Shown here one piece after another: positions 148 to 59,817 of a stretch of 64,000 nt of DNA (positions within the stretch are counted from its first letter, which is position 1; every line of letters starts with the position of its first letter). The notes under the pieces are model-generated. The model did not search any database. It was not told where the DNA came from and saw only the letters and a program-made list of their open reading frames with translations. The stretch lies in sequence record MH460460.1. The stretch is one strand, 5' to 3'. The position numbers and the translations under genes were made by a program.

Positions 148-549
148 ATGTCTGATTTTCTTCCATCCGATATTCGTCCCGGAACGCTGTTTGATAATCC
201 GGTTGAATATGTTCCGGAACTTTCACTTGCTCTTTTCAATCGCCTGTTGGTTGAACTCAAAAAGAATTCGGTATCCAGTAATCGCTTTGCGTTTATGGTT
301 GGCGATGCACTGCGCGAAAGTTTTGATGACTGTCGCCGTGGCGCGAGTGATATGTTGCTGTCGATGTATTTCGATCCGTACATGAAAGAACTTCCAAAAG
401 AATATTTGGGGGTTATTCTCGGTACTCCTATCTTCGCGAACTCTGATTTAAATCCCTATGCGCTTATTGCTGTAAGTTTCGCGCAATCCCGCGACGGCAA
501 ATATGATGCGCAATTTCAGACTGGTATTGATCTCACGCCAAATCTGTAA
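148..549 (+). CDS. Hypothetical protein
   Basis: 133-aa ORF with AGGAG RBS. Confidence 0.85.
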   Translation: MSDFLPSDIRPGTLFDNPVEYVPELSLALFNRLLVELKKNSVSSNRFAFMVGDALRESFDDCRRGASDMLLSMYFDPYMKELPKEYLGVILGTPIFANSDLNPYALIAVSFAQSRDGKYDAQFQTGIDLTPNL

Positions 550-552
550 ATA
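544..552 (+). promoter_or_regulatory. CTGTAAATA motif copy (candidate phage promoter core)
   Basis: The 9-mer recurs at 544, 4743, 52351, 53901, 59731 and 59776, all at gene ends or intergenic. Confidence 0.45.
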
Positions 553-602
553 GGTATTGAAGAATTGCTGTGTGTAGTCTTGCTCTCATAAAGAGCATTT
601 TC

Positions 603-628
603 GGGGCGCTTCGGTGCCCCATTTTTTT
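603..628 (+). terminator. Intrinsic terminator
   Basis: GGGGCGC-TTCG-GTGCCCC followed by a T run. Confidence 0.85.
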
Positions 629-666
629 TAACTCTCGATAGCCCAATGCGGGCAGGAGAAAATCAA

Positions 667-1446
667 ATGTCAAACTTCATTGAAGTGACCGTTATCCGCG
701 ATACTCAGGTATTAGACGGAATCATTCATGGCGCATACCGCCGCAATCGTGACGCAATGAAATCCGTTAAGGAAGCGTCAAAATTTAATAACACGCAAGA
801 AGTCGAATCTCTCAAGATGATGGTAAATCAAAACTTCTTCGCGTATGTCGATGTTACGAAAAAAGCTGCGGAGTCTGCAATCTTCTCTGCGCTCAAACGC
901 GATGACTCAGGTTTCATTACTACCGGTATTCATGTTTGCCAAAATGATTTTCGTGGAAGGTCTGCGCAAAGTCCTTCCATTATTTTCTCTGATAATCTCG
1001 AAGTGATTTCAGATCAGGATTTATCGTCGGCACTGCGCTCGATGTTTATAACGCTTTTCCGAAGCGGTGCGACATTCAAAAAGGCTTTCCGTTTTTATTG
1101 TTCCGGAAACTTTTCAGAAAAATTCTGCCGCTGTTTAGCCGAAGCATATTACAATTTTAAAATCGACGGTGTGGGTCATATCCATCCGTACACCGGAACG
1201 AAGTCGATGCCTATTCCGGCGCAGGATCTTCACTCGCTGTTCATTGAGAATCGTACACCAAATAAAGAACTGGATAGTGCGAAATATATTGTTGTCGGCG
1301 AAGACCACGCAATTTATTATTCAGACCAGTTAATTGATCGTCTGATTCGCTACTGCACTTCTCGCGATATTCCTTTGTACATTCCGGAACAGCGCTATCG
1401 TCAATTCGTGATTGGAACTCAAATTCATTTTGGAGTAATCGCGTGA
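667..1446 (+). CDS. Hypothetical protein
   Basis: ORF; ATG at 667 preferred because of the upstream AGGAG RBS. Confidence 0.8.
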   Translation: MSNFIEVTVIRDTQVLDGIIHGAYRRNRDAMKSVKEASKFNNTQEVESLKMMVNQNFFAYVDVTKKAAESAIFSALKRDDSGFITTGIHVCQNDFRGRSAQSPSIIFSDNLEVISDQDLSSALRSMFITLFRSGATFKKAFRFYCSGNFSEKFCRCLAEAYYNFKIDGVGHIHPYTGTKSMPIPAQDLHSLFIENRTPNKELDSAKYIVVGEDHAIYYSDQLIDRLIRYCTSRDIPLYIPEQRYRQFVIGTQIHFGVIA

Positions 1447-2021
1447 AAATAAATTTTGTGAACGACACGAACCCTAAAGCGTATCGTGTCGGCTTGTCTG
1501 TGTTTAGCGATTCTCCGGAAATGGAAAAACGCATTACGGACAATTTTAACAAGCAGCCAGACACGTTGCATTATTCTCGCCTTACTCAAATCGTTCGTGA
1601 TCGCCTGTGTGAGTTTGGCGTCAATATTCCTTTTGAGTGCGGCGCTGTTTTAAATCCTGTTTATGTGATTGCGTTTCGTAGCAGCTTTCTTGCCGTGCCT
1701 CTTCGCTTAGTTCAATTTATTGCGGAAGCGCATAGAGAAGTCTACGATCAGGCAGAGGCTTTTGCAGGTTGTCCTCGGCAAGAACTTGCGGCCTCTGTTA
1801 CTGCAACGCTTCAAGTTCGCGCCATAGAGCTTGGATATTTGAATCTTGATTTCCGCATTAGCGATTCTATGGATCTGAATATTCTGGCTGGATCGTATTC
1901 GGTGCATGTTGATTTTTCTAATCAGGTTTTGGAAATCACGCACGAAAAAGTTCGGCATGTCGGAACGATTGATTATATTCTGTTGGATTTATTTGGAGAA
2001 CATCATGACTGTAGCCACTGA
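1443..2021 (+). CDS. Hypothetical protein
   Basis: GTG start overlaps the upstream stop (GTGA). Confidence 0.8.
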   Translation: MKINFVNDTNPKAYRVGLSVFSDSPEMEKRITDNFNKQPDTLHYSRLTQIVRDRLCEFGVNIPFECGAVLNPVYVIAFRSSFLAVPLRLVQFIAEAHREVYDQAEAFAGCPRQELAASVTATLQVRAIELGYLNLDFRISDSMDLNILAGSYSVHVDFSNQVLEITHEKVRHVGTIDYILLDLFGEHHDCSH

Positions 2022-2538
2022 AATCGTTCAAAATTTTATTTCGCATATCTCTGAAAAACTTAACGGTACTCCTGATTATAGCAACACCGATCAGGGCGTC
2101 ATGGTTCAAATTGAAATCAAAGCGTCGCAGAATCTATCGGGGAAAATTGATTTGTCTATCGCGAATGAAGACGAAATCAAAAAATCTTATCCCCACGGTT
2201 TTCATATTCTGCGTGTCTTCGATACGCAATCGTTCCTGATCGCTTCCGGTTATGGCCGACCTGAGCATATGTATGTTTTGCAATTTGAAGTTTTGGCAAA
2301 GCAAGAAAATGAAATGTCGGCAGAAGAAAAAGCCGATGAGAAAGAGCGTATTAAAAATCTCAAAGCGCAGCAACAAGTCGAGGCAGATTCTCTGGTTCTT
2401 ACTTCTCTGGAAAATGGAATCGTCGATCTGATTCGTGCTAGTGATGATAAAATTCAGGCGTATGATGAAATGACGGATGCGAAAAAGAAAGTAATCCGCT
2501 CTCATTTGAACACCTTGCTGGCGCTGATGCGTTTGTAA
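2005..2538 (+). CDS. Hypothetical protein with central coiled coil
   Basis: GGAG RBS before ATG 2005; charged helical segment EEKADEKERIKNLKAQQQ. Confidence 0.8.
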   Translation: MTVATEIVQNFISHISEKLNGTPDYSNTDQGVMVQIEIKASQNLSGKIDLSIANEDEIKKSYPHGFHILRVFDTQSFLIASGYGRPEHMYVLQFEVLAKQENEMSAEEKADEKERIKNLKAQQQVEADSLVLTSLENGIVDLIRASDDKIQAYDEMTDAKKKVIRSHLNTLLALMRL

Positions 2539-2618
2539 AAACTTAGCCCACCAACGATTTCCTCCATAATTTATTTTGGTAGCATAGATTTGTTACTACA
2601 ATAATAAGAGGACACGTT

Positions 2619-2867
2619 ATGGCGAATCGCGGTGAAATTAGACTCGCATATAATCAGCGTCGTGATCAGTGGTTCTCTAAGGAGGAAGAAATTTCTTCTG
2701 CGAAAACCGTTGCATTCGTTGACTGCCGTATGTTTGTCCAATGCACATCCGATTGTGTTTCCGAACAATCCACCGATAAGAAAGTAATTTCTTACTACCG
2801 TGAGAATGCGCTTGTTGGTCAAGTCGTGTGGGTCGAAGAGGAAGTTCACTTTCGACTTATGATCTAA
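2619..2867 (+). CDS. Hypothetical protein
   Basis: 82-aa ORF with GAGGA RBS. Confidence 0.8.
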   Translation: MANRGEIRLAYNQRRDQWFSKEEEISSAKTVAFVDCRMFVQCTSDCVSEQSTDKKVISYYRENALVGQVVWVEEEVHFRLMI

Positions 2868-2873
2868 AAAACC

Positions 2874-2915
2874 AAAGGCTACTTTTTCTCTGGGGAAAGT
2901 AGCCTTTTTTATTTT
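2874..2915 (+). terminator. Intrinsic terminator
   Basis: AAAGGCTACTTT...AAAGTAGCCTTT stem followed by a T run. Confidence 0.8.
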
Positions 2916-2930
2916 CCGTGAGGATTCCAT

Positions 2931-4748
2931 ATGTCTACTATTTCTTTGTCGCAGAAGAGTCAAGAGATTGCCTCTCTGTCGGCATCTGTTGCGCAAAAGG
3001 AAGCTGCAAAGTTTCTTTTTGGCAAAAACTATTTGAAGATCCTTGAGACAATCGAGAAACTTGCGAAGTCGAAAGTGGTTGTATCGCCTCAATTGCGTGG
3101 TCTGCTTCTGATGATGCGCGATGCAGAAGACGCAGAGATCATTAAGTTTCAGAAATCCGTGCCGGGTAAAGCAACCATCAAAGCCGCGCAGGATCTGCTT
3201 AAAGCAAAAACTCTGGATGCAAGTTTGAAAGCATTCCGTGGAATAAAGGTTGCGAAGAAATGGACGCAGGAGGCAGGCAAAACAAAAGACGTGACGAAGC
3301 CTGTTCCGAAAGTTAAACCTGCTCGCCAGCCTAAACCTGCGCCGGAAGAAAAACCTGTTCTGAAAGTTGGTGAACAAGTTAAGTCTGCACCGAAAATTGG
3401 AACGCCTCAAATTCCTGATCTCACCAATAAACCAAATCCGGATACCAAATTCGGCAAACTGGTTAATGACACCGTTCGCGTTATCGTGAATGCTGCATAC
3501 CTGATCGATGATTCAATGATCATGCTGACCAAAAACGGCGGCTATCAAATTCGTATCTATCCAAAAGTTACTGACAACCCGCGTGAAGATCTCGCTTATG
3601 GGATCATTGTTCATAAAGACGAAACTTTCAGTTACGGTGTTTATGACAAAAACGGTATCGGTAAAACTGTCGGCAGTGATACCAACATGCGCAAAGCAGT
3701 GTCGCGCATTATTCACGAAATCGAAACCAACAACCCGACCAATGCTAACGCGTTTCAGGTTGCTTTCGGTAGAGGCAAAGCAAAAGACGATCATAAATCT
3801 GAAACCGTTCTGGTTGATGAAATTTCTGATGTGTTGCCGCAAACTCTGGATAAAAAGTTTGAGAACTATACCGATCACGTTAAAGCGATTGGCGATAACC
3901 TCAAACGAAATATTCCCGGCCTGAAAACTAAATTGCTTCCTCGCGGTCTGGAATTGATCATGGGGCAGGATGAATTCGGCACGCTGAAATTCGGTGATGG
4001 GCGTTGGTTACTCACGCCTTATAAACGCGTACACAAGACGGTTGATATCGGGCAGAACTATGACGCAGGCTACGTGATTCAAACACTGAAAGATATGTTT
4101 GAGGCTGATCGTAAACGTGCTGCGCGTAAAGAAAAAACTCACGGCGTAACAGATAACCTGATGTTGAAATACAAACAGGATATGATGAGCGCACTGGCAA
4201 GTAGCGATCTGAAACTGTTCGACGAAGTTCATAACGGAAAAGAAACCAACGACGATAATCTTGTTTGGGATATGTCGTATCGTATGCCTGAAACTGGAAT
4301 CTCGTTGCCTGTTTCTATTCGCTATAATCGCCGTCGTGGTTACAGCTTTGGATTGAATGGCGCACCTTACACGATGATTCAACCGGGCGTAGCTCAGAAC
4401 ATTGGTAAGTTTGTTCGCGCTCTCAAATCCACTATTGCCGCTGTTGTGAAAGGTAGCAGTAAAAAATATGCGCTTGTTGATGGGCGTCCGTTTACTCCGG
4501 GAACTGGCGTGCTGCACGCGAAAGCGAAAGCGGTTGATATTCGCTGCACGCAAACAGCAATTTTCCTTACTGGTAATCCTGCGGCGGTTTCGACTTTGTT
4601 CGACGGAAGTTTCAAACAGCCTCTGCTGGATTCTAAAGGTACGGCAACCGTGAACCGTGCGGCACCGAACAACTATCGCATTCTCTGCAATAATGAGGAA
4701 GTGCGTGATCAAATCCTGATGGGTGCAAACATCATCCGGAAACTGTAA
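2931..4748 (+). CDS. Large basic multi-domain hypothetical protein
   Basis: 605 aa, GAGGA RBS, Lys-rich N-terminal part and a Pro/Lys linker (KPVPKVKPARQPKPAPEEKP). Confidence 0.85.
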   Translation: MSTISLSQKSQEIASLSASVAQKEAAKFLFGKNYLKILETIEKLAKSKVVVSPQLRGLLLMMRDAEDAEIIKFQKSVPGKATIKAAQDLLKAKTLDASLKAFRGIKVAKKWTQEAGKTKDVTKPVPKVKPARQPKPAPEEKPVLKVGEQVKSAPKIGTPQIPDLTNKPNPDTKFGKLVNDTVRVIVNAAYLIDDSMIMLTKNGGYQIRIYPKVTDNPREDLAYGIIVHKDETFSYGVYDKNGIGKTVGSDTNMRKAVSRIIHEIETNNPTNANAFQVAFGRGKAKDDHKSETVLVDEISDVLPQTLDKKFENYTDHVKAIGDNLKRNIPGLKTKLLPRGLELIMGQDEFGTLKFGDGRWLLTPYKRVHKTVDIGQNYDAGYVIQTLKDMFEADRKRAARKEKTHGVTDNLMLKYKQDMMSALASSDLKLFDEVHNGKETNDDNLVWDMSYRMPETGISLPVSIRYNRRRGYSFGLNGAPYTMIQPGVAQNIGKFVRALKSTIAAVVKGSSKKYALVDGRPFTPGTGVLHAKAKAVDIRCTQTAIFLTGNPAAVSTLFDGSFKQPLLDSKGTATVNRAAPNNYRILCNNEEVRDQILMGANIIRKL

Positions 4749-4753
4749 ATATT

Positions 4754-4783
4754 AGGGAGTGGGCGAAAGCTCATTCCCTTTTT
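4754..4783 (+). terminator. Intrinsic terminator, identical 30-bp copy at 14557-14586
   Basis: AGGGAGTGGGC-GAAA-GCTCATTCCCT followed by Ts. Confidence 0.85.
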
Positions 4784-4800
4784 CAATTCTGGAGCCAAAA

Positions 4801-5394
4801 ATGTCCTCTGTTTCATGTCTGGTGATTCGCTGTAATCAAAAACAATTCGAAGCGAAAGAAATCTTTTCGTATCTTCGAATCAAAGCAAAACTTTCTACCG
4901 TCTCTGCTGTTATGCTCGCTGTTGAAGACGCAGGACGCTATTCGTTTTATATCCTGCGCGATCTGTTTTATTTCCGTAACGTGTCGAAAACGAAAACTGA
5001 CAAGCCGTTTACTATCAAGTGGACAGAACATCCGGAACCGGTAACGCAAAACCAATTGCTTGATGGCAACCGCTGGCACCTGACGCAGTTTTTTAATTCC
5101 GACCGTGGTTTGGATTCCGGATATATGGTTTCAGAATTGCAGACCGCAACCAATGTTAGCCTGACGCATTGCCAACGTTTCTTTGTTGATCCGGAAACCA
5201 CTGTTCCGCGCAATCGCGTTAAGCGTGTTGTTGAGCGCAATCCGTTTTTGAAATCTGCTACGGTTGGTGAAATCATTCGCGAAATGAATCGCCGTGGCTA
5301 TGAAATGACTTACGCACCGAAAGAGAACAGCAATGAAAAAGATGGGAACGGTAACGGTTCTGTCGTTGAAGGACAAAGCGCCGAAGAACGTTGA
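4801..5394 (+). CDS. Hypothetical protein
   Basis: ATG 4801 with GGAG RBS; the track's earlier GTG lies inside the terminator. Confidence 0.8.
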   Translation: MSSVSCLVIRCNQKQFEAKEIFSYLRIKAKLSTVSAVMLAVEDAGRYSFYILRDLFYFRNVSKTKTDKPFTIKWTEHPEPVTQNQLLDGNRWHLTQFFNSDRGLDSGYMVSELQTATNVSLTHCQRFFVDPETTVPRNRVKRVVERNPFLKSATVGEIIREMNRRGYEMTYAPKENSNEKDGNGNGSVVEGQSAEER

Positions 5395-5974
5395 TTTGGA
5401 TATCACTCCAGTTTCTACTGATGACGAGTGGAGCGCGTTAAGCCCTTTTAAACTCGGCCCTTGTCGAACGGCAGGCGGTACTTTATTTTTCAATTTCGAA
5501 AATCTCTGGCAGTACAGTAAAGTTTATCCGGAACATCTGGAATCAGATAACGATCTTCTTTGCGGAGAAGTTGCTTCGGAATGGTTTCGCTGGCACATGA
5601 GCGGCGCACGCGAAAGAAGAGGCATTCGCTATCCTATGGGGAAAGGAGCAAAAGCAAAATTCTCCGTTTGGGGAAACCTGCGCCTTTCCTATATCTCAGC
5701 ACGTAAAATGATTTACGTTCCTGAATATTCAAAACTGCTTTTGGCTAACACGAAGTTCCGAAAACTTTTAAGGCAGTACAATAAAGGCGCTAACATTGTC
5801 ATTCGTGATTACGATACTTACGATGCTTTGAAAGCGTATGCGAATAAAAAAGAACATCATCCGTTTCTTTATGCGTTGAATAATCCTGATAAGAAATTCG
5901 GTCATGGTTTCGTTATTGGCATGGCGCTGATGTTGAACCCTGTTCCCGGATGGTACGATCAATGGGTGCTGTAA
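5333..5974 (+). CDS. NADAR-superfamily-like / DUF6939-like protein
   Basis: Motifs FENLWQYSKVY, SARKMIYVPEY and GHGFVI recall NADAR-related phage proteins; recognised from memory only. Confidence 0.45.
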   Translation: MKKMGTVTVLSLKDKAPKNVDLDITPVSTDDEWSALSPFKLGPCRTAGGTLFFNFENLWQYSKVYPEHLESDNDLLCGEVASEWFRWHMSGARERRGIRYPMGKGAKAKFSVWGNLRLSYISARKMIYVPEYSKLLLANTKFRKLLRQYNKGANIVIRDYDTYDALKAYANKKEHHPFLYALNNPDKKFGHGFVIGMALMLNPVPGWYDQWVL

Positions 5975-6663
5975 TGTATAACGTAAACGAACCTCTAAGC
6001 CCAATGTTGAGAGATATAAAAATGCGTTCAATGCCTATGAAAACTTTATTTATCAGCGTCACCGATTCTCAGTTTGGTACTCATGCCGCTCGTATCTCCA
6101 ATGAACTGGCTAAAGTTCTTCTTGCTGATCCGGTTGAGTCCGTTTGTGTTCTGCGCAAAACCAATTCTAATCTGCACGTTTTCGAAATCTATTTCTGCAA
6201 ATCGGCGGAGATTGATTTCAACGGCGCAGAATACCACGTTCGTTTTGTTCCGCTCTCGCGCCCGGTAGCAACTTATCCCGGCACCGGAATGTTCGATCCG
6301 TCGATTCTGAATAGCGCTATTGAAAACGGTTCGCTGCTGAACGATCAGCTTTTCACTTCTGAAATGCAACGTGCTTCCAGACAAACGCTCTCGCCTGTTG
6401 TGATGAATGCCTCTGTTCGTCACCGCATCGGTGATTACTCTGCGCATCTGACTGCGAAAGATAACACGATTAAGGCGCTCAACGACGAACTGAATTTACA
6501 TCGCGCCGTTCTGCGCAAAGACTATTGGATTTGGGAGGACGATTTTAAATCTAATGGTTTGGACTCATTGAACTGCCCAATCTTAATTTCTCCGGAACAG
6601 TTACGCAGTCTGATTCTCGCTGCAACGCGAAGTTCAGAACTTGCTTTGGAGATTAGTGAGTAA
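5974..6663 (+). CDS. Hypothetical protein
   Basis: TAATG overlap with the previous gene. Confidence 0.8.
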   Translation: MYNVNEPLSPMLRDIKMRSMPMKTLFISVTDSQFGTHAARISNELAKVLLADPVESVCVLRKTNSNLHVFEIYFCKSAEIDFNGAEYHVRFVPLSRPVATYPGTGMFDPSILNSAIENGSLLNDQLFTSEMQRASRQTLSPVVMNASVRHRIGDYSAHLTAKDNTIKALNDELNLHRAVLRKDYWIWEDDFKSNGLDSLNCPILISPEQLRSLILAATRSSELALEISE

Positions 6664-6980
6664 TGTTCAGCACAATGATGTTTATTCGTGTCTTCGGATC
6701 TAGTTACATGATCAATCCTACTCTGATTGATGCCGGACGAAAAACTGTCGTAGTAGATCCGAAAGATTTTGTTCCACTGATTCCCGGCTTTGTTGTCGGT
6801 GCGCCTTACGCTATTTGCCCGTTGCCTAAAATCTTGAAAAAGGTTGGGTGTGATTGGCGAGTAAAATCTTTCGAGCGCCTCGAATCGGGCAAATGGCGCT
6901 ACTTGTTTCATTACCTTAATACGGAATGGACAGTAGAAATGATCGTGGGAAAAGATTATGGGAAAGTTATCAAAGGCTGA
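6663..6980 (+). CDS. Hypothetical protein
   Basis: TAATG overlap; 105 aa. Confidence 0.75.
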   Translation: MFSTMMFIRVFGSSYMINPTLIDAGRKTVVVDPKDFVPLIPGFVVGAPYAICPLPKILKKVGCDWRVKSFERLESGKWRYLFHYLNTEWTVEMIVGKDYGKVIKG

Positions 6981-8127: not shown

Positions 8128-8140
8128 TTAGAGGAAACGT

Positions 8141-9531: not shown

Positions 9532-9588
9532 GTCTCCCGGCGGGGAAATGGAATGCCCCGCAAAACTCCCTTCTCTTTGTCCTTTGAA

Positions 9589-32071: not shown

Positions 32072-32365
32072 ATGAGTTATCAAGCAACTGATACTGCACC
32101 TCGTAAACTGGAACTGAATAAATCCTCACTCCAGTCTTTGACGCTCTATGCCCACGGTCTGATTAGTTTGTCCGATCTTATCCATCTGCTCGGTGGGGAA
32201 AAAATAACTATCTCGCATGTGAGTACAACTTTCACTAGCGACTGTATCACGATCTCGAACGGTATTAAGCAGACTGATCTTTTCTTCCATTTGGCGAGAC
32301 TGTCCGGCGAAGAAGATGAGCGCGGCTTCCCAATCAACGACGAAACTTGTGTCGTCAATCTGTAA
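32072..32365 (+). CDS. Hypothetical protein
   Basis: AAGGT RBS. Confidence 0.7.
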   Translation: MSYQATDTAPRKLELNKSSLQSLTLYAHGLISLSDLIHLLGGEKITISHVSTTFTSDCITISNGIKQTDLFFHLARLSGEEDERGFPINDETCVVNL

Positions 32366-32419
32366 ACAAAATATAGGCGTGGCATAGGCTGCGCCTTTCT
32401 ACGTTATGGGGAATTATTT

Positions 32420-38758: not shown

Positions 38759-38803
38759 GTGTCTGAAATACCGCTGGTAACATATACGCCTTTTCTGTAA
38801 ACT
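38747..38803 (+). promoter_or_regulatory. Bipartite-box promoter, copy 6 (variant TGTCTGAAA; overlaps the upstream stop)
   Basis: CTCTGCAAA-TAAG-TGTCTGAAA-N29-TAAACT. Confidence 0.75.
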
Positions 38804-42189: not shown

Positions 42190-42246
42190 CTCTGCAAAAC
42201 AGTGTCCAAAATAGCGATGGCATTTCGGCACTGAAATCTGTAAACT
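42190..42246 (+). promoter_or_regulatory. Bipartite-box promoter, copy 7
   Basis: CTCTGCAAA-N4-TGTCCAAAA-N29-TAAACT. Confidence 0.8.
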
Positions 42247-49401: not shown

Positions 49402-52349
49402 TGAATTCCTCTCAAACTTTCGGAACCGCCGCACATGCGGCAACTGTTACGGAACAGAATCTGAATGCAGGTTCTCCGGCAACTAAAAGCACGGTAATTG
49501 TTGTGCTGTGTCCGACTGTAAACGGCAACCAAATTTTCCGTGCGGAAAATAGCGGCAATGTTTCTCAAACAGTCGCGCAGGGTAAAGCGCTTAATCGTCT
49601 GACTGATCTTCTGGCGATGGCAGGCGATAACGCTGGTCATGAACTGATGAGCGCTGCCGCTTCTATCGACGAGCGCTGCAAGCTGAAAGACAGTGCTGCG
49701 ATGATTCTTCGCTATACTGTAAATGGTAGTGTAGAACGTCTCCAGAAAACTTTGTCTGAGGCGTTGTTTAAGGTCGGCGAAAAAGCTGCAAATGATAATA
49801 CTACGTTAGCGTCGTATGCCAGTCGTTTTGGTGTTCACGCAATCGCGGTATCTGCGGAAAGTAATTCATACGCAATCGTTACAGCGATTCGTGATCAACT
49901 GGAAGCGTTCGACCGCAACGAAAGCAATTTTATCGTTGCGCAGAAAGCAAGTGTTGAGCAAATCAATGCTCCGGTTATCGACTGGTCTGCAACTTCCGCA
50001 AACGTTGTTCTGGAAGGTGCTGCGTTAAGTTTTGTAGTTCGCTCGGAAAAAACCCGCGTGAATTTCCTGATTAATCCTATTAAGGGGAATAATGTTGTGA
50101 GTAACGATCAGAAAGCTCTGTCTGTTTTCAGCCGCGAAAATCAGGCGTCCGTAACTATGGAAGAAAAAGTCGCTGCACTCGAAGCTCTCGGTTACGATCT
50201 CGGCGCTATGCCGGATGAAGAAATTGCGCTGTCCTACGATAGCGAGCGCGTTGATTTTCTGGAAGGCGCTGGCGTTGAAGTAAACTCCGGCGACGAAGGC
50301 GAAACTGACGACGCCGAAGAATCGGAAGAAGATTCCGAAGAAGGCGAAGAGGAAGAGGAAGAAGAGGAAGACGATTTCTCCGCTTCTGAAACTCTGGCAG
50401 AAATTCTGACTAACGCCCAACTGGATCGCGCTCAACTGAAAAAGCTGGTGTTCCTCGCAGGCGGTAAAGTGTTTACCTCCGACACCGAAGAAACTCTGAC
50501 GGTGAAACTGCTGGAACTGGTCGAAGATAAAGACTACAGCGAATTCTTCCAGTTTGCGCTGGACGCTAATGAACGTCTCGGCGGCGTTGAAGGTTTTGCT
50601 GATTTCCTTCACAACGAAAGTGTTCTCGCTACCGACGAAGAAGAATCTGAGGAAGAAGATTCCGAAGATGACGGCGACGAAGGCGACGATGCCGAAGGCG
50701 ACGACGATGATTCCGAAGATGAGGATGATTCGGAAGACGAAGATGGCGAAGATGAAGACGACGAAGACGAAGAAGATCTTTCCTTCAACTCTGTTGTCGA
50801 ATTCATCGAACTGATCGGCGGCGATCTGAATCGCGAAGTTATTCGCGCAATTGCTCGCTCCGAAAACTTCGGCCTGAAAACTTACAAGAACGAAGACGCT
50901 GCTGCAATCTTCGAACGTGTAGTTGAAGTGCTGAACAATAACGAACTTTCTCCGGAAGATTTCGAACAACTGATTCACGATCTCGCGCAGATCGAAGTTG
51001 TTGCCGCTGCCTATCCGGAATGGGCTGAGTACGAAGTCAATCCGACTGACTACACTGAACTGTTTAACTTCGAAGGCGGTTCCCTGTCTCACGAACAGCG
51101 CGTTGCCGCTCTCGAAGCTGCGGGTAACGATCTCGAAGGTATGGGCATGGTTGCCGTGCTGAAACTCTTCGAAGAGTATCGCCGCGAAAATGGTTACGGT
51201 CAGGAAAGCGAAGAAGCTGCTGACGAAACTTACGCGCTGGATTCTGATGCGGAAGACGAAGGCGAAACTGACGAAGGCGACAACGCCGACGAATCTTCCG
51301 ACGAAGAGGAATCCGAAGAGGAAGAATCTGAGGAAGAAACCGAAGAAGAAAACGACGAAGCGTTTGTTTCCGATTCTTCTGAAAGTGATATCGGTACTTT
51401 CCTGCGTGTTCGTCAGGAACAAATGCTGCTGGTCAACTTCACGCTGACTGATCGCAGTACGTTTGAAGATCTCGCCGAAGAACTGCGCGATCAAAACGGT
51501 GTTGATTACCGCGTACCAATCAACATGAACGACGAAGCCGAAGGTTCTATGTACCTGCCGCTGACTGTCGCGAGCGATCTGCTGTCTGGTTCTGCTGCGC
51601 TGCCGTTCATGTCTGATCGCAAAACTTTCAACGTGGAAGACTACGCTGAAAAACTGGCTAACACTATGCGCGGTCAAATTTCTGCGCTGCTGTATGAAGG
51701 CCGTCTGGAAGCTGGACAAGATCCGTACACTAGCGGTCTGGTGCTCGGTGATTTCGTTGAAGACGAAGACGAAGATCTGGATGAAGACGAACTGAGTTCT
51801 GACTATCTGAACGAACTGGTCGGCGATCACATTCCGATGGCGTCTCTGTACAACGCACATGTTGGCGTGCGTCCGGTTGTAGTTGATACCGAAAGCACTG
51901 TTCTGAATACCATCGTGCTTAACATTGCAATGCCTTGCATTTGGGGCATCGGCAAGAAGAAAGTAAAAGATCTGGTAATCAGCACTTACAACCGTGTGCT
52001 TGCGCACATCGGCGAAACCGATATTAAAGTTTATGTTGGTTTCACGCTGAATTCCGGTTCACTGGTTTCTGATGAAAACCTGCAATTGGTTGTTCGTTCT
52101 GTTGGCGAAATGGCAAGCGAAGAAATCGCGGTGCATTCTTTCTCTTCTAACGATGTTCAGCGCATCGAAGAAAGCGAAGATCTGGTTGAAGCCGCGCATT
52201 CTGTCGGCACCGAAAACCTGCCGCTGGCGCTGCTGTCCTCCGGTATCGCTGACGCTGCATTTGCGAACGGCGGTGATCTGATTGTGATTCTGTCTCCGGC
52301 GGGTGATAGCGAAGACTACTCCGACGACGAAGACGAATCCGAAGAGTAA
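49401..52349 (+). CDS. 982-aa very acidic modular protein
   Basis: Several D/E tracts alternate with duplicated helical modules. Confidence 0.9.
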   Translation: MNSSQTFGTAAHAATVTEQNLNAGSPATKSTVIVVLCPTVNGNQIFRAENSGNVSQTVAQGKALNRLTDLLAMAGDNAGHELMSAAASIDERCKLKDSAAMILRYTVNGSVERLQKTLSEALFKVGEKAANDNTTLASYASRFGVHAIAVSAESNSYAIVTAIRDQLEAFDRNESNFIVAQKASVEQINAPVIDWSATSANVVLEGAALSFVVRSEKTRVNFLINPIKGNNVVSNDQKALSVFSRENQASVTMEEKVAALEALGYDLGAMPDEEIALSYDSERVDFLEGAGVEVNSGDEGETDDAEESEEDSEEGEEEEEEEEDDFSASETLAEILTNAQLDRAQLKKLVFLAGGKVFTSDTEETLTVKLLELVEDKDYSEFFQFALDANERLGGVEGFADFLHNESVLATDEEESEEEDSEDDGDEGDDAEGDDDDSEDEDDSEDEDGEDEDDEDEEDLSFNSVVEFIELIGGDLNREVIRAIARSENFGLKTYKNEDAAAIFERVVEVLNNNELSPEDFEQLIHDLAQIEVVAAAYPEWAEYEVNPTDYTELFNFEGGSLSHEQRVAALEAAGNDLEGMGMVAVLKLFEEYRRENGYGQESEEAADETYALDSDAEDEGETDEGDNADESSDEEESEEEESEEETEEENDEAFVSDSSESDIGTFLRVRQEQMLLVNFTLTDRSTFEDLAEELRDQNGVDYRVPINMNDEAEGSMYLPLTVASDLLSGSAALPFMSDRKTFNVEDYAEKLANTMRGQISALLYEGRLEAGQDPYTSGLVLGDFVEDEDEDLDEDELSSDYLNELVGDHIPMASLYNAHVGVRPVVVDTESTVLNTIVLNIAMPCIWGIGKKKVKDLVISTYNRVLAHIGETDIKVYVGFTLNSGSLVSDENLQLVVRSVGEMASEEIAVHSFSSNDVQRIEESEDLVEAAHSVGTENLPLALLSSGIADAAFANGGDLIVILSPAGDSEDYSDDEDESEE

Positions 52350-52358
52350 TCTGTAAAT

Positions 52359-52392
52359 AAATGGTGTGGGGCAAATTGCTCTGCACCATTTT
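52359..52392 (+). terminator. Probable terminator
   Basis: AAATGGTGTGGGGC-AAATT-GCTCTGCACCATTT. Confidence 0.7.
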
Positions 52393-52403
52393 AAGGATTC
52401 CTA

Positions 52404-53156
52404 ATGTCTGATACGCAAATTGAAGTTTTACATCGGACACTGTTTTCAACGCGTCAGTCACTTGATGAAAACATCATGGCACGTCGCGCAACCGAAAAGG
52501 TGTTGGATGAGCGCCTGAGTGAATTAGGCCGCTGTCAGGTTCAATTAAGCATTGCTCAAGAGCGAATTCTGAATCTCCAGACTGAATATAATAATGTTGT
52601 GGAGAAATCGGAAAGCAAAGCGAAGGATATGGAAGAAACTTTCCGTACCTCCGAAGCAAAGCTGAAAGAAGAAATAGTAATTCTGAACGACAAGATTTCG
52701 GAACTGCGTGCGCTCTGCCGTGATATGCCGGAAACTCCTGCGGAACAACTGCTGGAAAACGTACTGCATAAAACGATGGCGTATCTGCATTCGACTGTGG
52801 TGTATTTCGCTGCCCTCACGTTGAATTCCAATCCGCAATCTCTGGCTGGTAAAGAGTTGCTTGCGCTGACGAAAAAGCAAACCCTGAATCCGGGCAAATT
52901 GTTTTCACTATCTGTAAAGGAAAAGCAGATAGTCTTAGAAAACATTCGTTCGTTTGTGCAAGCAGAACTTGATAATTCTGAATACACAAACATCCGGGCG
53001 GTAATTACTGCAATGACCGCTTCGGATAAATCGTGGAAGACGTTTCGCGATAGCCTGAAAAATTCTAAGGTGCTTTTCTCACTCGCATCTGACAAACTGG
53101 AATTTGACTCTGCGGTAAACGCGGTCGTTGAATTCATTCTTGAACAATTGAAGTAA
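52404..53156 (+). CDS. Coiled-coil hypothetical protein
   Basis: AAGGA RBS; long heptad-like N-terminal half. Confidence 0.8.
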   Translation: MSDTQIEVLHRTLFSTRQSLDENIMARRATEKVLDERLSELGRCQVQLSIAQERILNLQTEYNNVVEKSESKAKDMEETFRTSEAKLKEEIVILNDKISELRALCRDMPETPAEQLLENVLHKTMAYLHSTVVYFAALTLNSNPQSLAGKELLALTKKQTLNPGKLFSLSVKEKQIVLENIRSFVQAELDNSEYTNIRAVITAMTASDKSWKTFRDSLKNSKVLFSLASDKLEFDSAVNAVVEFILEQLK

Positions 53157-53178
53157 TGAACGGGAGTTCGAAATAATC

Positions 53179-53757
53179 ATGGCTAAATCAAAGTCCACCT
53201 CACTGGTTCCGAAACGCATTGAGCGTATCACGAAAAAAGCTGGTGCAATCGCGCAGGTCAAATCCAAACAAACCGATCTGGCGCACGATATCGAAATCTC
53301 GACTCGCGGCGCACACGAAGTTTCCGGTTTCGTGATCGAAGTTACCGCTGACGATAGCGTAACGATCCGCCACAAGAAAGGCGCTGGTAGTTCCAAACAG
53401 ATCGTAAGCACGTTTACCAAAAACCAGATCATTAGCTTTATCGGTGAAGCTGGCGGTATGGGGCAACTGCTGGTTGACGCGTACATGGTTGTTCAGGTAA
53501 TTCGCGGTCAAACTGTAAAAGTTAAAGACGATGTGATTATCGCAACTGATATTCAGACTGGCGAAGTCACTCGCATCGCAACCAACATTCCGGGCTACGA
53601 TGTTCGCGCAATTGTTGACGAAGCTGTTGCTTCTAAAAAGTACGGCACTCCGATTGCAGTTGAAAAGAAAAAAGGCGCGGGCAAGGTAGAAAAAATTGCC
53701 AAAGGCGGCAAAGATAAGTCCGGTAAAAAGAAAAAGAAGTCTGACGAAAACTTCTAA
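53179..53757 (+). CDS. Basic beta-rich protein, possibly Sm/SH3-like fold
   Basis: Lys-rich termini; EVSGFVIEVTADDSVTI...KNQIISF recalls Sm-fold spacing (weak). Confidence is for the ORF. Confidence 0.8.
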   Translation: MAKSKSTSLVPKRIERITKKAGAIAQVKSKQTDLAHDIEISTRGAHEVSGFVIEVTADDSVTIRHKKGAGSSKQIVSTFTKNQIISFIGEAGGMGQLLVDAYMVVQVIRGQTVKVKDDVIIATDIQTGEVTRIATNIPGYDVRAIVDEAVASKKYGTPIAVEKKKGAGKVEKIAKGGKDKSGKKKKKSDENF

Positions 53758-53772
53758 TTCGGTTCCGGCCTG

Positions 53773-53853
53773 AATCTGTAAAGTAACGTTGAAGGACAGA
53801 ATCTGTAAATCAATTCTGTCAGACAGAAACTGTAAACAGTTAATGTCAAACGC
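53773..53853 (+). repeat. Degenerate 27-bp tandem repeat x3, each unit starting AAWCTGTAAA
   Basis: CTGTAAA at 53776, 53803 and 53830; GACAG ends units 1 and 2. Confidence 0.75.
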
Positions 53854-53961
53854 CACTGATTAATTTCGGTGGCGTCAGTTAAAAACATTTTTCTCTTAAT
53901 CTGTAAATAGTAATTGAACAAAGCGTTCATTACTGAACTTTCCTAAAGGATAAAATGAATC

Positions 53962-54744
53962 ATGGCTAAAGCAAAGAAAACCTCTAACGTAGCAATGGAA
54001 ACTCTGGCTAAAATGGCTGGCCTGCTTGTAGAAGCGGCTGCCGATGCAGAAGTTGCAGAACTTCTCGCCGAAGCCGGTCTGACCGTTGCCGCTAAAGGTA
54101 AAGGCAAAGCTAAAGCTGCTAAAGCTGAACCGAAAGCAAAAGGCGGCAAGAAAAAGAAAGTAACTGCCGCACAAATCGTTGAAGCCATCGAAGATGGTGA
54201 GTCCATCGAACTCGAAGGCACCGACGAAGAAGTTCTGCGCGAAGCCGTGGTCAAAGCGAAACTGACCAGTAAGAAAAAAGCGGCGAGCCTTGATGAAGAG
54301 GAACTGCTGGAACTGATTCAGGAAGCGTTGGGTTCTTCTGATGACGAAGAAGAAGACGACGAAGACGAAGACGACGAGGATGATTCTGATGAAGATGATT
54401 CCGACGACGAAGACGACGAAGACGAAGACGACGAGGATGATGAAGACTCGGACGACGACGAAGACGACGAAGACGGCGACGACGAAGATGATGAGGACGA
54501 CGAGGACGACGAAGACGAGGACGAAGATGACGAAGATGAAGATCGTGATCTGGAAGACCTCGACGAAGACGAACTCCGCGCGTTAGCCATCGAAGAAGGC
54601 GTGTTCACCAAAGCGCAGGCCAAAAAGAAAGACGAAGATGCACTCCGCGAAGCGCTGGAAGCTCACTTCGCTGGTGACGAAGATGAAGACGAAGACGACG
54701 AAGACTTCGACGACGAAGACGACGAAGACGAAGACGACGAGTAA
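53962..54744 (+). CDS. Bipolar protein: K/A-rich segment, two HeH-like modules, very long D/E tracts
   Basis: ~65-70 nearly pure D/E residues; modules DEEVLREAVVKAKL...DEEELLELI and DEDELRALAIEEGV...DEDALREAL. Confidence 0.9.
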   Translation: MAKAKKTSNVAMETLAKMAGLLVEAAADAEVAELLAEAGLTVAAKGKGKAKAAKAEPKAKGGKKKKVTAAQIVEAIEDGESIELEGTDEEVLREAVVKAKLTSKKKAASLDEEELLELIQEALGSSDDEEEDDEDEDDEDDSDEDDSDDEDDEDEDDEDDEDSDDDEDDEDGDDEDDEDDEDDEDEDEDDEDEDRDLEDLDEDELRALAIEEGVFTKAQAKKKDEDALREALEAHFAGDEDEDEDDEDFDDEDDEDEDDE

Positions 54745-54826
54745 TTAATCTTCAACTGCGGCACGCCCCGCTAAGTTGTATGACGAGCGCGGGGCAAAAA
54801 ATCTTCAAAAAACTTTGAAGAAAATT

Positions 54827-54863
54827 TTGTAGAAGTATGTTGAACATGCTAATGTACTTCTAC
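54827..54863 (+). promoter_or_regulatory. Sigma70-like promoter overlapped by an inverted repeat
   Basis: TTGTAG-N17-TAATGT with TG extension; GTAGAAGTA/TACTTCTAC inverted repeat. Confidence 0.55.
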
Positions 54864-54921
54864 GCAGAAAACGAATTCTGTTTTTACTCCACAACGAACA
54901 AATTGAATTTAAGGATTTATC

Positions 54922-55440
54922 ATGTCTAAGAAAGTAATCTCCGGCCTGAACAAACAAATCAAATCCATCGAAAAATCCGATGCCGCTCTGGTGAAGACCA
55001 TCGAAGGTTTGCAGAAACAGCGCGAAAATCTGGCGTCTACCAAAGACGGTCTGACCGAACAGGTTGCCGCTCTGTCCGGCGAAGCTGCTGCTCCGGCTGC
55101 TAAAGGCAAAGCGAAAGCTGAACCGAAAGCGAAAGCTGCTAAAGCTGATCCGAAAGGCAAAGGCAAAAAAGCCGCCGAAGAAAAACCGGCTAAAGCCAAA
55201 AAAGAAAAAGCTGCTAAAGCTGAGAAGCCTGCTAAGGCTGACAAGAAAGCGGCTAAAGGCGAAGGCAAAAAAGCCAAAGCTGAAAAGCCCGCCAAAGCTG
55301 ATAAAAAAGCTGCGAAAGGCGAAGGCAAAAAAGCCAAAGCTGAAAAGCCTGCTAAGGGCAAAAAAGTGAAAGGCGAAAAAGCCAGCAAGAAAAAAGGTAA
55401 AAACGCCGACGCAGGTTTTGAATTCGAACTGGACGATTAA
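54922..55440 (+). CDS. Histone H1-like (AlgP/Hc2-type composition) K/A/P-rich protein with N-terminal coiled coil
   Basis: AAGGA RBS; KAEKPAKADKKAAKGEGKKA repeats; assigned on composition only. Confidence 0.85.
   Translation: MSKKVISGLNKQIKSIEKSDAALVKTIEGLQKQRENLASTKDGLTEQVAALSGEAAAPAAKGKAKAEPKAKAAKADPKGKGKKAAEEKPAKAKKEKAAKAEKPAKADKKAAKGEGKKAKAEKPAKADKKAAKGEGKKAKAEKPAKGKKVKGEKASKKKGKNADAGFEFELDD
55216..55356 (+). repeat. 60-bp coding tandem repeat, ~2.3 copies, with synonymous divergence
   Basis: 20-aa period KAEKPAKADKKAAKGEGKKA. Confidence 0.85.
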
Positions 55441-55466
55441 TAGTTCCCTGCGCTGATTAAGTTGAT

Positions 55467-55499
55467 ACGGGTTAGGGATTATCTCCCTAGCCCGTTTTT
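55467..55499 (+). terminator. Intrinsic terminator
   Basis: ACGGGTTAGGGA-TTATC-TCCCTAGCCCGT followed by TTTT. Confidence 0.85.
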
Positions 55500-55533
55500 C
55501 GTTTCTGGTCGATTTTTCTCGATAGGTTTCCAA

Positions 55534-55875
55534 ATGGATCTTCACTCACGTTTCAAAAAACTTAACGAAGACTTGCTCGAACTTCAACAAGCTGTTCATC
55601 GCGTCGTTCGTATCTCTCCTTCAAAGTTCGCCGTTTGTTTTTATGATCGTCATGAGCAATCGCTTCGAACCAACGTTATTGATTCTCGTACAGCACACGA
55701 AATAAAACTCATTCAAGAAATGTCTGGCGCTGAGTTGCAATCCTATGGCGCTTTCGTTTCAGCCATTCAAGAATGGTGTGAAGCTGAATCCCCCGGTGAA
55801 TTCCCTATTCCATTAGACAAAGCAGACTCTGATAGCTACCGCACGCTAATTGATGCGATGACGATCCGGGAATAG
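55534..55875 (+). CDS. Hypothetical protein
   Basis: ATG 55534 after AGGT. Confidence 0.7.
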   Translation: MDLHSRFKKLNEDLLELQQAVHRVVRISPSKFAVCFYDRHEQSLRTNVIDSRTAHEIKLIQEMSGAELQSYGAFVSAIQEWCEAESPGEFPIPLDKADSDSYRTLIDAMTIRE

Positions 55876-55878
55876 CAA

Positions 55879-55935
55879 CTCTGCAAATCTGTGTCCAAAA
55901 CGTCGATAGCTTATCTAATACTTTCGTGCTAGAAT
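55879..55935 (+). promoter_or_regulatory. Bipartite-box promoter, copy 10 (drives the topoisomerase operon)
   Basis: CTCTGCAAA-N4-TGTCCAAAA-N29-TAGAAT with TG extension. Confidence 0.8.
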
Positions 55936-55993
55936 AGGCGGCGGGGAAATCCGTACATTAGACGTGTGAGGGAATCACGTTCGGAGAAAAATC

Positions 55994-58054
55994 ATGGCGA
56001 AGAAAGCCGAAGTAAAAGTTCTAAAAAAGAAAGTAGTAGCCAAAGCGGTTGGAAAAGAAATCAAGAGCAAGAAAAATGCTCAAGAGGGATTCACCGCTCT
56101 TTCTGTAATGGAAGGCTTGCGTAAAAACCCCGGTATGTATCTCGGCGAACCGGGCGAAGATATGGCATATCGTTGCGTCAAAGAAGTTACCGACAACGCA
56201 TACGATGAAGCCGTGGCAGGACGAAATAAATTAATCGAAGTGATCTTCAACGAAGACAAAGATATTTATATCGTTGCTGATGGTGCTGGCGGCATTCCGA
56301 CAACTGTTAAAAAGATTTACGATGGATCTTCCGAAGCGATCATGACTTCCGCATTTACGCGTGTTCACGCTGGCGGTAAATTTGATAACGCTGCATACAA
56401 AACTTCTGCTGGTACGCATGGTGTTGGTGTTACTGCTGTTAACGCCGTGTCAGAAAGAATTCGTGTGTGGTCGAACTTCGAAAAGAAAACAAAAGGCATG
56501 GAGTATTCCAAAGGCGAATGCGTAACAGCAATCAAGAATTGGGAAGTCGATGCTGATGTTGTGAAGCTGCTGCAAGATCCGGCGAAAAAATACGGAACGA
56601 TTGTCGCGTGGACTCTCGACCAAACTGTTGTGAGTATCGACTCGCGCCGTGGTAAAAAACTGCCGAAGGATTACACTCACGCAAAACTTAACGTTGAGCG
56701 TACTCGCGAATGGTTGCAGGCAATGTCTGATCTCAATCCGGGATTAGAGATTCGCTTTACGCACATCAAAGATAAAAAAGGTAAGCGCACTGTTTTCTTA
56801 AACAAGAAAACTATGAGCGATGTAGTTAAACGCATTGCAGACGAGCGCGAATTGGTTTTGGACGGCAAGCCGTTCGAACTGAAAACTGATTACGTTTCTA
56901 TCGCGATCAGTTGGGCTGATTATCCGGATACCGATTTGTTGCGCACGTTCGTAAACACGTCTCCTACTCTGGATCATGGCTGGCACGTAACAGGTTTCAG
57001 AAGCGCTCTCGAAGCTGCATTGAAACCGTATCTGCCGAAAGCGAAGAAAGGCGGCAAAACATTTACGGCAAGTGATTTGCTTGTCGGTGTTATTGGCATG
57101 TTCGACTGGCGTATGCACGGCGCACAATATACATCGCAGGTAAAAGATAAACTTGCTAGTCGTGTTGAAAAAGAAGTTCAGGCGATCATTGAAAAACCGT
57201 TGACCGATTTCTTTGCGAAAAATAAATCTCTCGCGAAGAAAATCATCAAACGCGCAGAAGCAATGATGAAAGGCCGTGATGAGTTGAGCGCTGTTATTCG
57301 TTCGATGGCTGACACGAAGAAAAAAGTTGCTGGTAATTCGTTGCCTCCGTTCCTCGAAGCTGCGCCGCGTTGTAAACCGTTTGAGCGTGAATTGGTTGTG
57401 GTGGAAGGTGACTCCGCAGGCGGTACAGGTAAGAACGCTCGCGATCCTTACTATCAAGAGATCATGAAAGCTGGCGGTAAACCTCTTAACGGTTTGAAAG
57501 CGCCGCTGGCAAAAGTGCTTGTGCATAAACAGGTGCAAGGTTTGTTGGTGAGTATTGGCGCGGATTTAAAAACACTCGATCCCAAAGCAGAGAATCCAAC
57601 TCTGAGCACGGAAAAATTACGCATTGGTAATCTGCTGTTCCTCGCAGATGCTGACCCGGATGGCAGTCACATTAACACGCTGTTCCTCGCTGTTATCTAT
57701 CGACTGTTGCCGGATATGATGCGCGAAGGCCGTGTATGGGTTGTCGATGCTCCACTCTATAACGTGATGTACAAAGGCAAACATTATGGCGGCATGACGT
57801 TTGAAGAGTGTCGTGCGATTGCGCCTAGCGCCGTTAAGGATAGCGAAATCGTTCGTGCGAAAGGTTGGGGTGAAGTTAACCCTGATGTTCTGCGTGCGAT
57901 TGCATTCGATCCGGAAACGCGCCGACTCATTCGAATCAATCCGTTTGAGAACGCAGAGCAAGAACGTTTCTTCCGTGGTGTCGTTGCGGAGGACGCGATC
58001 TATCGCCGCCGTTTGTTAGGTCTGGTTGAAGTAAATGCAGGGGATGAAGAATAA
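55994..58054 (+). CDS. gyrB: Type IIA topoisomerase subunit B (GyrB/ParE-like)
   Basis: GHKL ATPase: [41 protein letters not shown]: [20 protein letters not shown]. Confidence 0.95.
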
Positions 58055-59736
58055 TGGCAACCATTAAGCCGAAGAAAAACGCGAAGCCAGAAAAAACGAA
58101 AGTTAAACCTGCTGCGAAATCGAAAGCCGTTGCGAAGAAATCCAAAGGCATTGAAGTTGCCGATATCAAGCCGGGTAAAAAACTCAAAAAGAAAACTGAT
58201 ACTGCAATCACTACCGCAGTAGAAAGTAAGTATCCGCTCAAAGGACAGAAGCCTGAAAACATTCGTGACGAAGGTTTGGCTGCGTTTACTGAGCGTGAGT
58301 TGCGTAAGTATGGATCTTACGTTGTGGAAGATCGCGCCATTCCAGATTTTCGTGATGGTTTGAAACCTGTTCACCGTGCGATCATTTGGGCAATGTCGGA
58401 TCTCAATCTGTTGCCGTCCGGTGGTTTTAAAAAGAGTGCGCGTGTTGTTGGTGATGCTCTCGGTAAATATCATCCTCATGGTGATGGTGCGTGTTATGGC
58501 GCAATGGTTACGGTTGCTAACACCGTGCCCCCTGCTGTAGATGGTCAAGGCAATTGGGGAACGCCAACTGATCCATTTGCTGCGATGCGTTATACCGAAG
58601 CAAAACAAAGCCGCTTCACGCAAATGTTTTTGCTCGATAAAAACTATTTGCAAGTTACGCCGATGGTTAGCAACTTCTCTAACGATATGAAGTTGCCTCT
58701 TCACCTTCCGGCGCTGTTACCGTTCATGTTGTTTGCTGGTACGGTTCCGGCTCCGGCGTATGGTGTGAAGTGCGGAAACCCAACGTTCACTTTCGCCAGC
58801 GTTGCGCGTGTCGTAATTGATATGCTTAACGGCGTTGAATACGATCACAAAAAACTCGCGAAGACATTAGTTATTCAGCATGAGTTTGGTTGTAAGAACA
58901 TTACTTCCAGTAGCGAAATGTTGAACCTGATGCGAACCGGGCGCGGCAAAGTAACTTACGAACCGGAAATGAAAATTGATCTGAAACGCAAAACGATTGT
59001 GATTCAGACGTTCGTTCCTCTCGGATTCGCGTCGGAAGACGGCATTGAAAAAATGCTGACGAAGTTCGCTTCTATTCAGGGCGTATCAACTGCGCATTCT
59101 GTTGGCGGCGAGCGAAATCCGGATGCGGGTACTTATGGTTGTGCTGTTGAAGTTGTGATCGGTCGCGGTGTTGATGAAGATCGTTTCTATGAGATCGCGC
59201 AGGAAGTTCAAAAGCTCGTTACCAAATCCGTTTCGTATATTCTCGGTGTCACTGTTCGTCATGCAGATAAGCCGAATAGCTTTAAGTATCTCGATTATCT
59301 CTCCTACTTCAAAGCGTGGGTGACGTATCGTAAGAAACTCGAAGTGCGTATGTTGGATTGGTTGATTACGCGTGCGCAGAAAGAACTCCACTTGCAGGAA
59401 GTTTATTTATTCGCAGTAGAGAACAAAGACAAGTTGCTTAAAGCGCTGCCTAAAGTTCTGGCTTCGAAGACTCCTGATGAGGCGCTCGCGAAAGCAATCA
59501 AGCTCCCGGTCGAAGATGCAAAAATCATTTTGGATCGTCAGGTGCGTAAACTGGCGACGCTTGAGAAAGCCGATCTGGTTGCGAAAATTAAATCGTTGAA
59601 ATCCGATATCGCTGGCTGGCAGAAAGGCTTGAAGGCTCCGGGCAAGTATGCAGGGAAAGACACGGAAGATCGTGTTGTTCGTTACTTGAAAAATCCGGAT
59701 GAGAACAAGCCTAAACTCGGCTACGGAAAACTGTAA
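58054..59736 (+). CDS. gyrA: Type IIA topoisomerase subunit A (GyrA/ParC-like), lacking the C-terminal pinwheel domain
   Basis: [37 protein letters not shown] (catalytic Tyr); only 560 aa. Confidence 0.95.
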
Positions 59737-59817
59737 ATACTAATTGGGATCTGTAGACTAGGAATATTCCTAATACTGTAAATAATAGTAATTAGGAACT
59801 GTAAACAGATCCCTTTT
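59731..59817 (+). other. Nested inverted repeats with four CTGTA(A/G)A copies
   Basis: Outer GGGATCTGT/ACAGATCCC; inner TTCCTAATAC/GTAATTAGGAA; palindrome TAGGAATATTCCTA. Confidence 0.7.

Follow-up and report, generated by a model that had tools for sequence, protein, structure and literature searches.

In phage T4, late promoters are read by a truncated phage sigma factor on the host core enzyme. Single-element promoters read by a phage sigma are also described for phages phiEco32 and 7-11, in which the word tAATGTAtA marks middle and late classes, with experimental proof in phiEco32 only (PMC4331800). The closest described case is phage Lu11 (JQ768459.1), whose record carries 16-nucleotide (nt) features at 107991, 114217, 124262 and 124340 that are annotated as 'putative middle/late promoter' and begin with CTGTAAAT. 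Herein, we describe a box of this kind, CTGTAAATA, in Dickeya phage vB_DsoM_JA13 (genus Salmondvirus; record MH460460.1, 254,061 bp). The window that we analyzed is the last 64 kb of this genome, and is 100% identical to positions 190062-254061 of the record; genome-wide counts were made on the full public record with its annotation. An initial annotation of the window had read the box as a T4-type late promoter core, served by a sigma-like factor of the phage itself. Our analysis points to a promoter of another gene class: with a probability of about 0.7, the full consensus, AAWCTGTAAATA, is a single-element promoter of replication ('middle') genes in JA13 and in the jumbo-phage group of Lu11, PaBG and Y3. 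The JA13 paper contains no promoter analysis, and a literature search for the box word returned unrelated matches only.

The window is a plus-strand block in which most genes are small and hypothetical; two topoisomerase subunits and the JA13_319-323 operon stand at its end. Six exact copies of CTGTAAATA were recovered in it (544, 4743, 52351, 53901, 59731 and 59776), every one on the plus strand and, as the initial annotation had it, between genes or at a gene end. Dinucleotide shuffles gave an expectation of 0.30 copies per window, and none of 100 shuffles reached six. All 17 exact copies in the JA13 genome follow the local gene orientation: 13 are on the plus strand in plus-strand blocks, and four on the minus strand in the minus-strand block. 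Sixteen of them fall in the roughly 17 kb of intergenic and gene-end sequence, and a single one in the roughly 237 kb of coding interior. This 148-fold ratio answers the comparison of intergenic with coding sequence that had been proposed as a check. Since the open reading frame (ORF) caller takes the longest ORFs, some 'interior' sites are truly upstream of real starts, and the intergenic counts are conservative. In a k-mer count of the genome, AATCTGTA, ATCTGTAAA and CTGTAAATA were the top-enriched intergenic 8- and 9-mers. In the three cases noted earlier, the upstream ORF terminates at the TAA of the box: 544 (ORF 148..549), 4743 (2931..4748) and 59731 (58054..59736). About one-third of the boxes supply a stop codon, as expected of a compact genome whose ORFs extend to a word with TAA in one of its frames.

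To define the element, a sequence logo was built from 32 gene-sense intergenic CTGTAAA sites, the genome having about 32 relaxed sites; in the window, seven relaxed copies add to the exact ones (32360, 42238, 53776, 53803, 53830, 59799 and a weak one at 38795). The conserved word, AAWCTGTAAA(T)A, is longer and looser than CTGTAAATA. No -35 box was found in this logo, which shows no conservation upstream of AAW, and the 10 bases after the box are poor in C. At +15 from the box C, a purine is present in 30 of the 32 sites, usually with a T just before it; across five genomes, this fraction ranges from 26/28 to 29/32. The purine lies 6 nt past the box. When TAAATA is read as positions -12 to -7, the conserved purine therefore falls at +1, which is the -10 geometry of the sigma70 family. 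We infer a promoter with TAAATA at -12 to -7, CTG just upstream and no -35 element, in which the conserved purine is the most likely start of transcription. The predicted 5' leaders to annotated starts would be 21-32 nt long where no hairpin intervenes and 33-57 nt long where one does. The lack of a -35 element, the strict gene orientation, the position some 20-60 nt before start codons and the purine at a fixed distance agree with the lone -10-type element that had been suggested.

Next, the box was compared across JA29, Y3, AD1, Yoloswag, Lu11 and PaBG. JA13 has almost no nucleotide similarity to its relatives, and a 20-kb query is matched by megablast over 4% of its length, at 71% identity. 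The box nevertheless precedes a shared set of orthologous genes in JA29, Y3, AD1, Yoloswag and Lu11, and does so in the form [G/C]TGTAAA in PaBG. The exact 9-mer occurs 31 times in Y3, 29 in Yoloswag, 28 in AD1 and 19 in JA29, compared with 1-5 for a reversed control, and its strand tracks the gene strand; in Lu11 there are 48 copies of CTGTAAAT vs 6. PaBG has few exact copies, and AAGTGTAAAC is among its top-enriched intergenic words. The sharing of the box by orthologues is significant in Y3, AD1 and Yoloswag (odds ratios 28-64, p 2e-9 to 1e-11), and in Lu11 and PaBG (p about 1e-4). The logo was recovered independently, with its purine at +15, in JA29, Y3, AD1, Yoloswag and Lu11. When JA13 sites were aligned on the core with those of other genera, flank identity was about 0.3 and was higher at -3, -2, +7 and +15 only. 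Ahead of the sigma gene JA13_221, AATCTGTAAATA is identical in four phages amid sequence that otherwise differs.

The genes behind conserved boxes encode DNA ligase, DNA polymerase I, an HNH endonuclease, a recombination endonuclease, the single-stranded DNA (ssDNA)-binding protein and a DNA polymerase III beta-like protein; JA13_152, 199, 200 and 205 also belong to this set, as do the sigma gene JA13_221 and JA13_222, whose annotation is that of an ssDNA-binding protein. The primase gene, a lone gene on the opposite strand, has a conserved box in its own orientation. The box is found ahead of replication and recombination genes in seven phages. It does not occur directly upstream of any annotated capsid, portal, terminase, sheath, tube or baseplate gene. 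Another word, aCGCTAATTT(T/A), stands 21-42 nt ahead of start codons before the sheath gene in all five phages, and before several other virion-module genes. This word is conserved in JA29, Y3, AD1 and Yoloswag, TAATTTAA is enriched in Lu11, and the word is probably a late promoter. With the box before replication genes and another word before virion genes, the 'promoter' part of the initial annotation is supported, and the 'late' part had to be given up.

A third promoter-like class was found in the small-gene region. It consists of (AA)CTCTGCAAA, a few bases, TGTCCAAAAT, and then a sigma70-like hexamer exactly 38 nt past the T of TGTCCA; in short, AACTCTGCAAA-n-TGTCCAAAAT lies 38 nt upstream of a TAnnnT hexamer. 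The hexamers are TATCCT, CATACT, TAAACT, TAAGAT, TACACT and TAGAAT, and Y3 has a variant, AACTCTGCATATAATAGGCTAAAATAG. In the window this class heads small genes and the topoisomerase genes, and it is likely the early class (class 1). A scan of JA13, window included, showed canonical sigma70 promoters to be nearly absent and not enriched, with two intergenic matches at a score of at least 10/12.

Phages of this group are reported to encode sigma factors and no RNA polymerase, two sigma candidates have been reported in PaBG, and gp33 orthologues in the group were described by Iyer et al. Since no phage RNA polymerase is annotated in these phages, the host core enzyme must transcribe their genes. 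JA13_221 is a sigma70-family protein, with region 2 recognizable by both sequence and fold. It has a weak match to Sigma70_r2 (17.8 bits), its homologues carry RpoD-like names and PF04542, and it belongs to PHROG 17569, 'RNA polymerase sigma factor'. All 18 matches of its family profile in the PDB are sigma factors. The model of a homologue 97% identical to JA13_221 aligns with the Escherichia coli sigma70 fragment 1SIG (Z 12.3, 220 residues), and the C-terminal part of the model is short and poorly resolved. The box lies directly upstream of this gene in every genus.

The second sigma-like protein, JA13_322, is the one that the initial annotation had in mind as the reader of the box. Its likeness to sigma factors was recovered in the predicted fold and not in the sequence. 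No match to sigma region 2 or 4 was obtained with Pfam, phmmer against the PDB, profile searches or hhalign against the JA13_221 family, and the last of these showed no relation between the two families. In the model of JA13_322 (predicted local distance difference test, pLDDT, 74), residues 143-240 align with RpoE (5uxx_C) at Z 9.9 and a root-mean-square deviation of 2.1 Å over 82 amino acids, and with FliA at Z 9.0; overall, Z is 9-10 and the deviation 2-3 Å. The top 50 Foldseek matches are almost all sigma chains, though weak ones (E-values of at least 0.17, TM-scores near 0.2), and the cluster of ESM look-alikes bears Sigma70_r2. By its model, JA13_322 looks sigma-like, with a fold resembling sigma domain 2. 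Its operon sits behind three boxes and also downstream of a class-1 promoter at window position 55892. The box was thus found ahead of both gene sets for which it had been claimed, the 52-54 kb genes and the operon with the JA13_322 gene.

Taken together, these results suggest that the reader of the box would most likely be a sigma-like protein encoded by the phage and acting on the core RNA polymerase of the host; JA13_322, JA13_221, or host sigma70 with a phage cofactor are the candidate readers. The box would switch on DNA polymerase, ligase, ssDNA-binding protein, primase, clamp, recombination nuclease, JA13_221 and several window genes, and the virion genes would use another box. Several observations weigh against the box as a promoter of this kind. 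By host sigma70 rules, position -7 should not be an A and the TG should not touch the hexamer, although phage sigma specificities may differ. JA13_221 bears the box itself, and as box reader it would need another first source of transcription. The other candidate, JA13_322, has no sequence-level sigma match, and middling Z scores come easily for helical folds. The box at 544 and the three copies at 53773-53838 have hairpins downstream, from which short or attenuated transcripts are expected. No experimental start sites were found for JA13 or Lu11, and the public runs that contain this DNA are contigs from wastewater 'RNA-Seq', probably DNA and unable to show 5' ends; the starts remain predicted.

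At some sites the box adjoins a terminator. At 4743 it is directly followed by a strong hairpin with a U-run (-18.9 kcal/mol, z -4.5), and likewise at 52351 (-18.8 kcal/mol, z -5.1); these are the two places where hairpins had been seen before. Hairpin onset is 0-3 nt past the box at about six JA13 sites, the two in the window being these. Folded from the predicted +1, -7.4 (4743) and -9.2 (52351) kcal/mol remain, values that do not differ from those of shuffles; more than half of the stability is lost, and the stem that is left no longer adjoins the U-run. Upstream transcripts would end at the fused terminator, and box transcripts would begin inside the 5' arm of the hairpin and escape it. 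We infer that box and intrinsic terminator may form a fused 'stop-and-restart' module in JA13 and JA29. The association is confined to these two phages, and its absence in AD1 and Yoloswag rules out terminator fusion as a general property of the box.

This module can be joined to a sigma cascade. JA13_322 would be produced from early class 1 and would in turn read CTGTAAATA, turning on the replication genes and JA13_221; and JA13_221 would then read CGCTAATTT for the virion genes. The assignment of JA13_322 to the box and of JA13_221 to the virion-gene box is coherent but hypothetical, and we regard the complete scheme, with module and cascade combined, as tentative and somewhat doubtful.

Next, we considered whether the box could be something other than a phage-sigma promoter of replication genes. 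It could be an early promoter that unmodified host sigma70 reads as an odd extended -10 element. Both sigma-like genes lie behind the box, and a host reader would avoid the chicken-and-egg problem that this poses; canonical sigma70 promoters are almost absent, yet something must start the programme. TAAATA indeed retains T-12 and A-11, with TG nearby. The extended -10 pattern (TGnTATAAT, T at -7) is however not matched: the box has A instead of the key T at -7, its TG is one position too close, and it lacks a -35 element. The third class (AACTCTGCAAA..TGTCCAAAAT, 38 nt before TAnnnT) looks more early, and PaBG and Lu11 use different box variants even though they share the host genus Pseudomonas. 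We therefore consider the host sigma70 reading unlikely.

The initial annotation had proposed a late promoter of the T4 type, serving virion genes and recognized by JA13_322. The likeness to the T4 core that it had noticed holds at 7/8 positions (TGTAAATA vs TATAAATA), in a lone -10 element without -35; JA13_322 is sigma-like by fold and its operon has the box upstream, and the Lu11 authors' own label was 'middle/late'. What makes this reading quite unlikely is the gene class. No annotated virion gene has the box directly upstream, aCGCTAATTT stands there instead and is kept in four genera, and the box is ahead of replication genes in seven phages. An exact T4-style TATAAATA was observed once, at about 175170-175180 of the record, on the minus strand of the divergent spacer between JA13_202 and JA13_203.

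It is very improbable that the box is no polymerase element at all but a site at which a regulator of the phage binds DNA or RNA, for instance as translational operator, processing site or 3'-end signal. Its frequent overlap with the upstream stop codon, the adjoining hairpins in JA13 and the tandem copies would suit such a site. The hairpin link, however, stops at JA13 and JA29; in spacers that also contain a terminator, the box lies after it, or so near before it that the predicted start falls in the stem, which suits a DNA signal rather than a single RNA element; and the constant spacing of the conserved purine is that expected of a start site. The initial annotation had named Leu-stop (CTG TAA) codon bias as its own alternative, but the chance that the box arises from such a bias at the ends of genes is close to nil, and the counts refute it: 13 JA13 genes end in CTG-TAA vs 4.2 expected, but 10 of the 13 have AAW before CTG and nine of those 10 have A(T/C)A after TAA, so that the box causes the excess and not the reverse, most copies are out of frame with any stop, and AD1 has 28 boxes but five CTG-TAA gene ends vs 6.2 expected.

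The sites in the window, the two other promoter-like words and the two sigma-like genes are listed in Table 1.

Table 1. Positions of the box copies in the window and of related features in JA13 (window coordinates unless the record is named)
Feature	Position	Strand	Context
AATCTGTAAATA	541..552	+	TAA 547-549 is the JA13_224 stop; predicted +1 near 559; JA13_225 start 667
AAACTGTAAATA	4740..4751	+	TAA is the JA13_229 stop; terminator hairpin 4754-4779 adjoins; predicted +1 4758 in its 5' arm; JA13_230 start 4801
AATCTGTAAACA, relaxed	32357..32368	+	TAA is the JA13_282 stop; 52 nt ahead of JA13_283
AATCTGTAAACT, relaxed	42235..42246	+	ahead of JA13_302
AATCTGTAAATA	52348..52359	+	2 nt past the JA13_311 stop; terminator hairpin 52360-52390 adjoins; predicted +1 52366 in its 5' arm; JA13_312 start 52404
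AATCTGTAAAGT, AATCTGTAAATC, AAACTGTAAACA, relaxed	53773..53838	+	27-nt period; after JA13_313, before a hairpin
AATCTGTAAATA	53898..53909	+	past the hairpin; 52 nt ahead of JA13_314 (start 53962)
AAACTGTAAATA, ATACTGTAAATA, GAACTGTAAACA	59728..59807	+	three copies before the JA13_319-323 operon (start 59890); TAA of AAACTGTAAATA is the topoisomerase subunit A stop
Third class, likely early	9602, 14640, 23437, 30733, 34679, 42203, 44430, 44592, 55892	+	TGTCCAAAAT box class
aCGCTAATTT(T/A), probable late promoter	record 68317, 76199, 95261, 100845, 111913, 124965, 146129, 159251, 165172	-	before virion-module genes including tail sheath
JA13_322 ('62470 protein')	62485..63618	+	sigma-like by predicted fold only
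JA13_221	record 186322-187359		2.7 kb before window start; sigma70-family region 2 protein

Some of these sites have a more complex surrounding. Between the box at 544 and JA13_225, a small hairpin comes first and a strong terminator second (559-645; fold -25.8 kcal/mol, z -2.8), a segment without a match in Rfam; a promoter here would give an RNA of about 75 nt or an attenuated leader. The TAAACT of the relaxed box before JA13_302 is also at the fixed 38-nt distance from the TGTCCAAAAT box upstream of it at 42203. At 53773-53838, three relaxed copies form a tandem repeat and are followed by a hairpin and by a fourth, exact copy; the layout is the same in JA29, and AD1 has two copies. Before JA13_319, a 9-bp inverted repeat, GGGATCTGT / ACAGATCCC, flanks copies 2 and 3 of the box, with TTTTCC after it and a further hairpin, GCATACCA...TGGTATGC, past it, which makes 59746-59846 a complex control region. 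Outside the window, the minus-strand block has three gaps of 0.7-1.2 kb that hold no genes (record 76168-76859, 77172-77907 and 172221-173463). Two of the three gaps contain box copies (76692, 77795, 77900), and a tRNA scan found no tRNAs in them.

Contigs 95-100% identical to window positions 52300-58299 are present in wastewater metagenome runs from three studies, and indicate that near relatives of JA13 circulate in wastewater. The present results provide a first transcription-unit map for JA13, a phage that is a candidate for biocontrol of a potato pathogen and in which about 85% of the genes are 'hypothetical'. The map comprises three promoter-like classes, each sharply defined, together with the two sigma-like proteins. 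By the box, JA13_225, 230, 283, 302, 312, 314 and 319-323 would be placed in a replication-time regulon. The box may also serve engineering as a compact, portable and phage-specific promoter.

Compared with known systems, the JA13 box resembles the phiEco32 and 7-11 promoter (PMC4331800) in being a 9-bp single element with TGTA that was found by intergenic over-representation; that promoter is read by a divergent phage sigma, has another word and belongs to an unrelated phage group. With the T4 late promoter TATAAATA (gp55, gp33, gp45), it shares a single -10-region element without -35, seven of eight bases and a predicted start a few bases downstream. It differs from the T4 element by an invariant G at the second position, where T4 has A, by an extra C and AAW upstream, and by serving replication genes rather than virion genes. 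The closest likeness is to Lu11. The core word, the gene-oriented intergenic placement and the place before orthologous replication and recombination genes are those of the CTGTAAAT promoter class of the Lu11 group, and gene orientation and downstream orthologues (DNA polymerase, primase, recombination nuclease) are the same. The two phages differ in that the box is annotated in Lu11 and unannotated in JA13, in that AAA is favoured before the box in Lu11 and AAT in JA13, and in the terminator fusion of JA13 and JA29. A phage sigma with a single-box promoter is a textbook principle, and the box was already predicted in Lu11 in 2012; JA13 brings no new mechanism to it, and adds annotation and a testable cascade.

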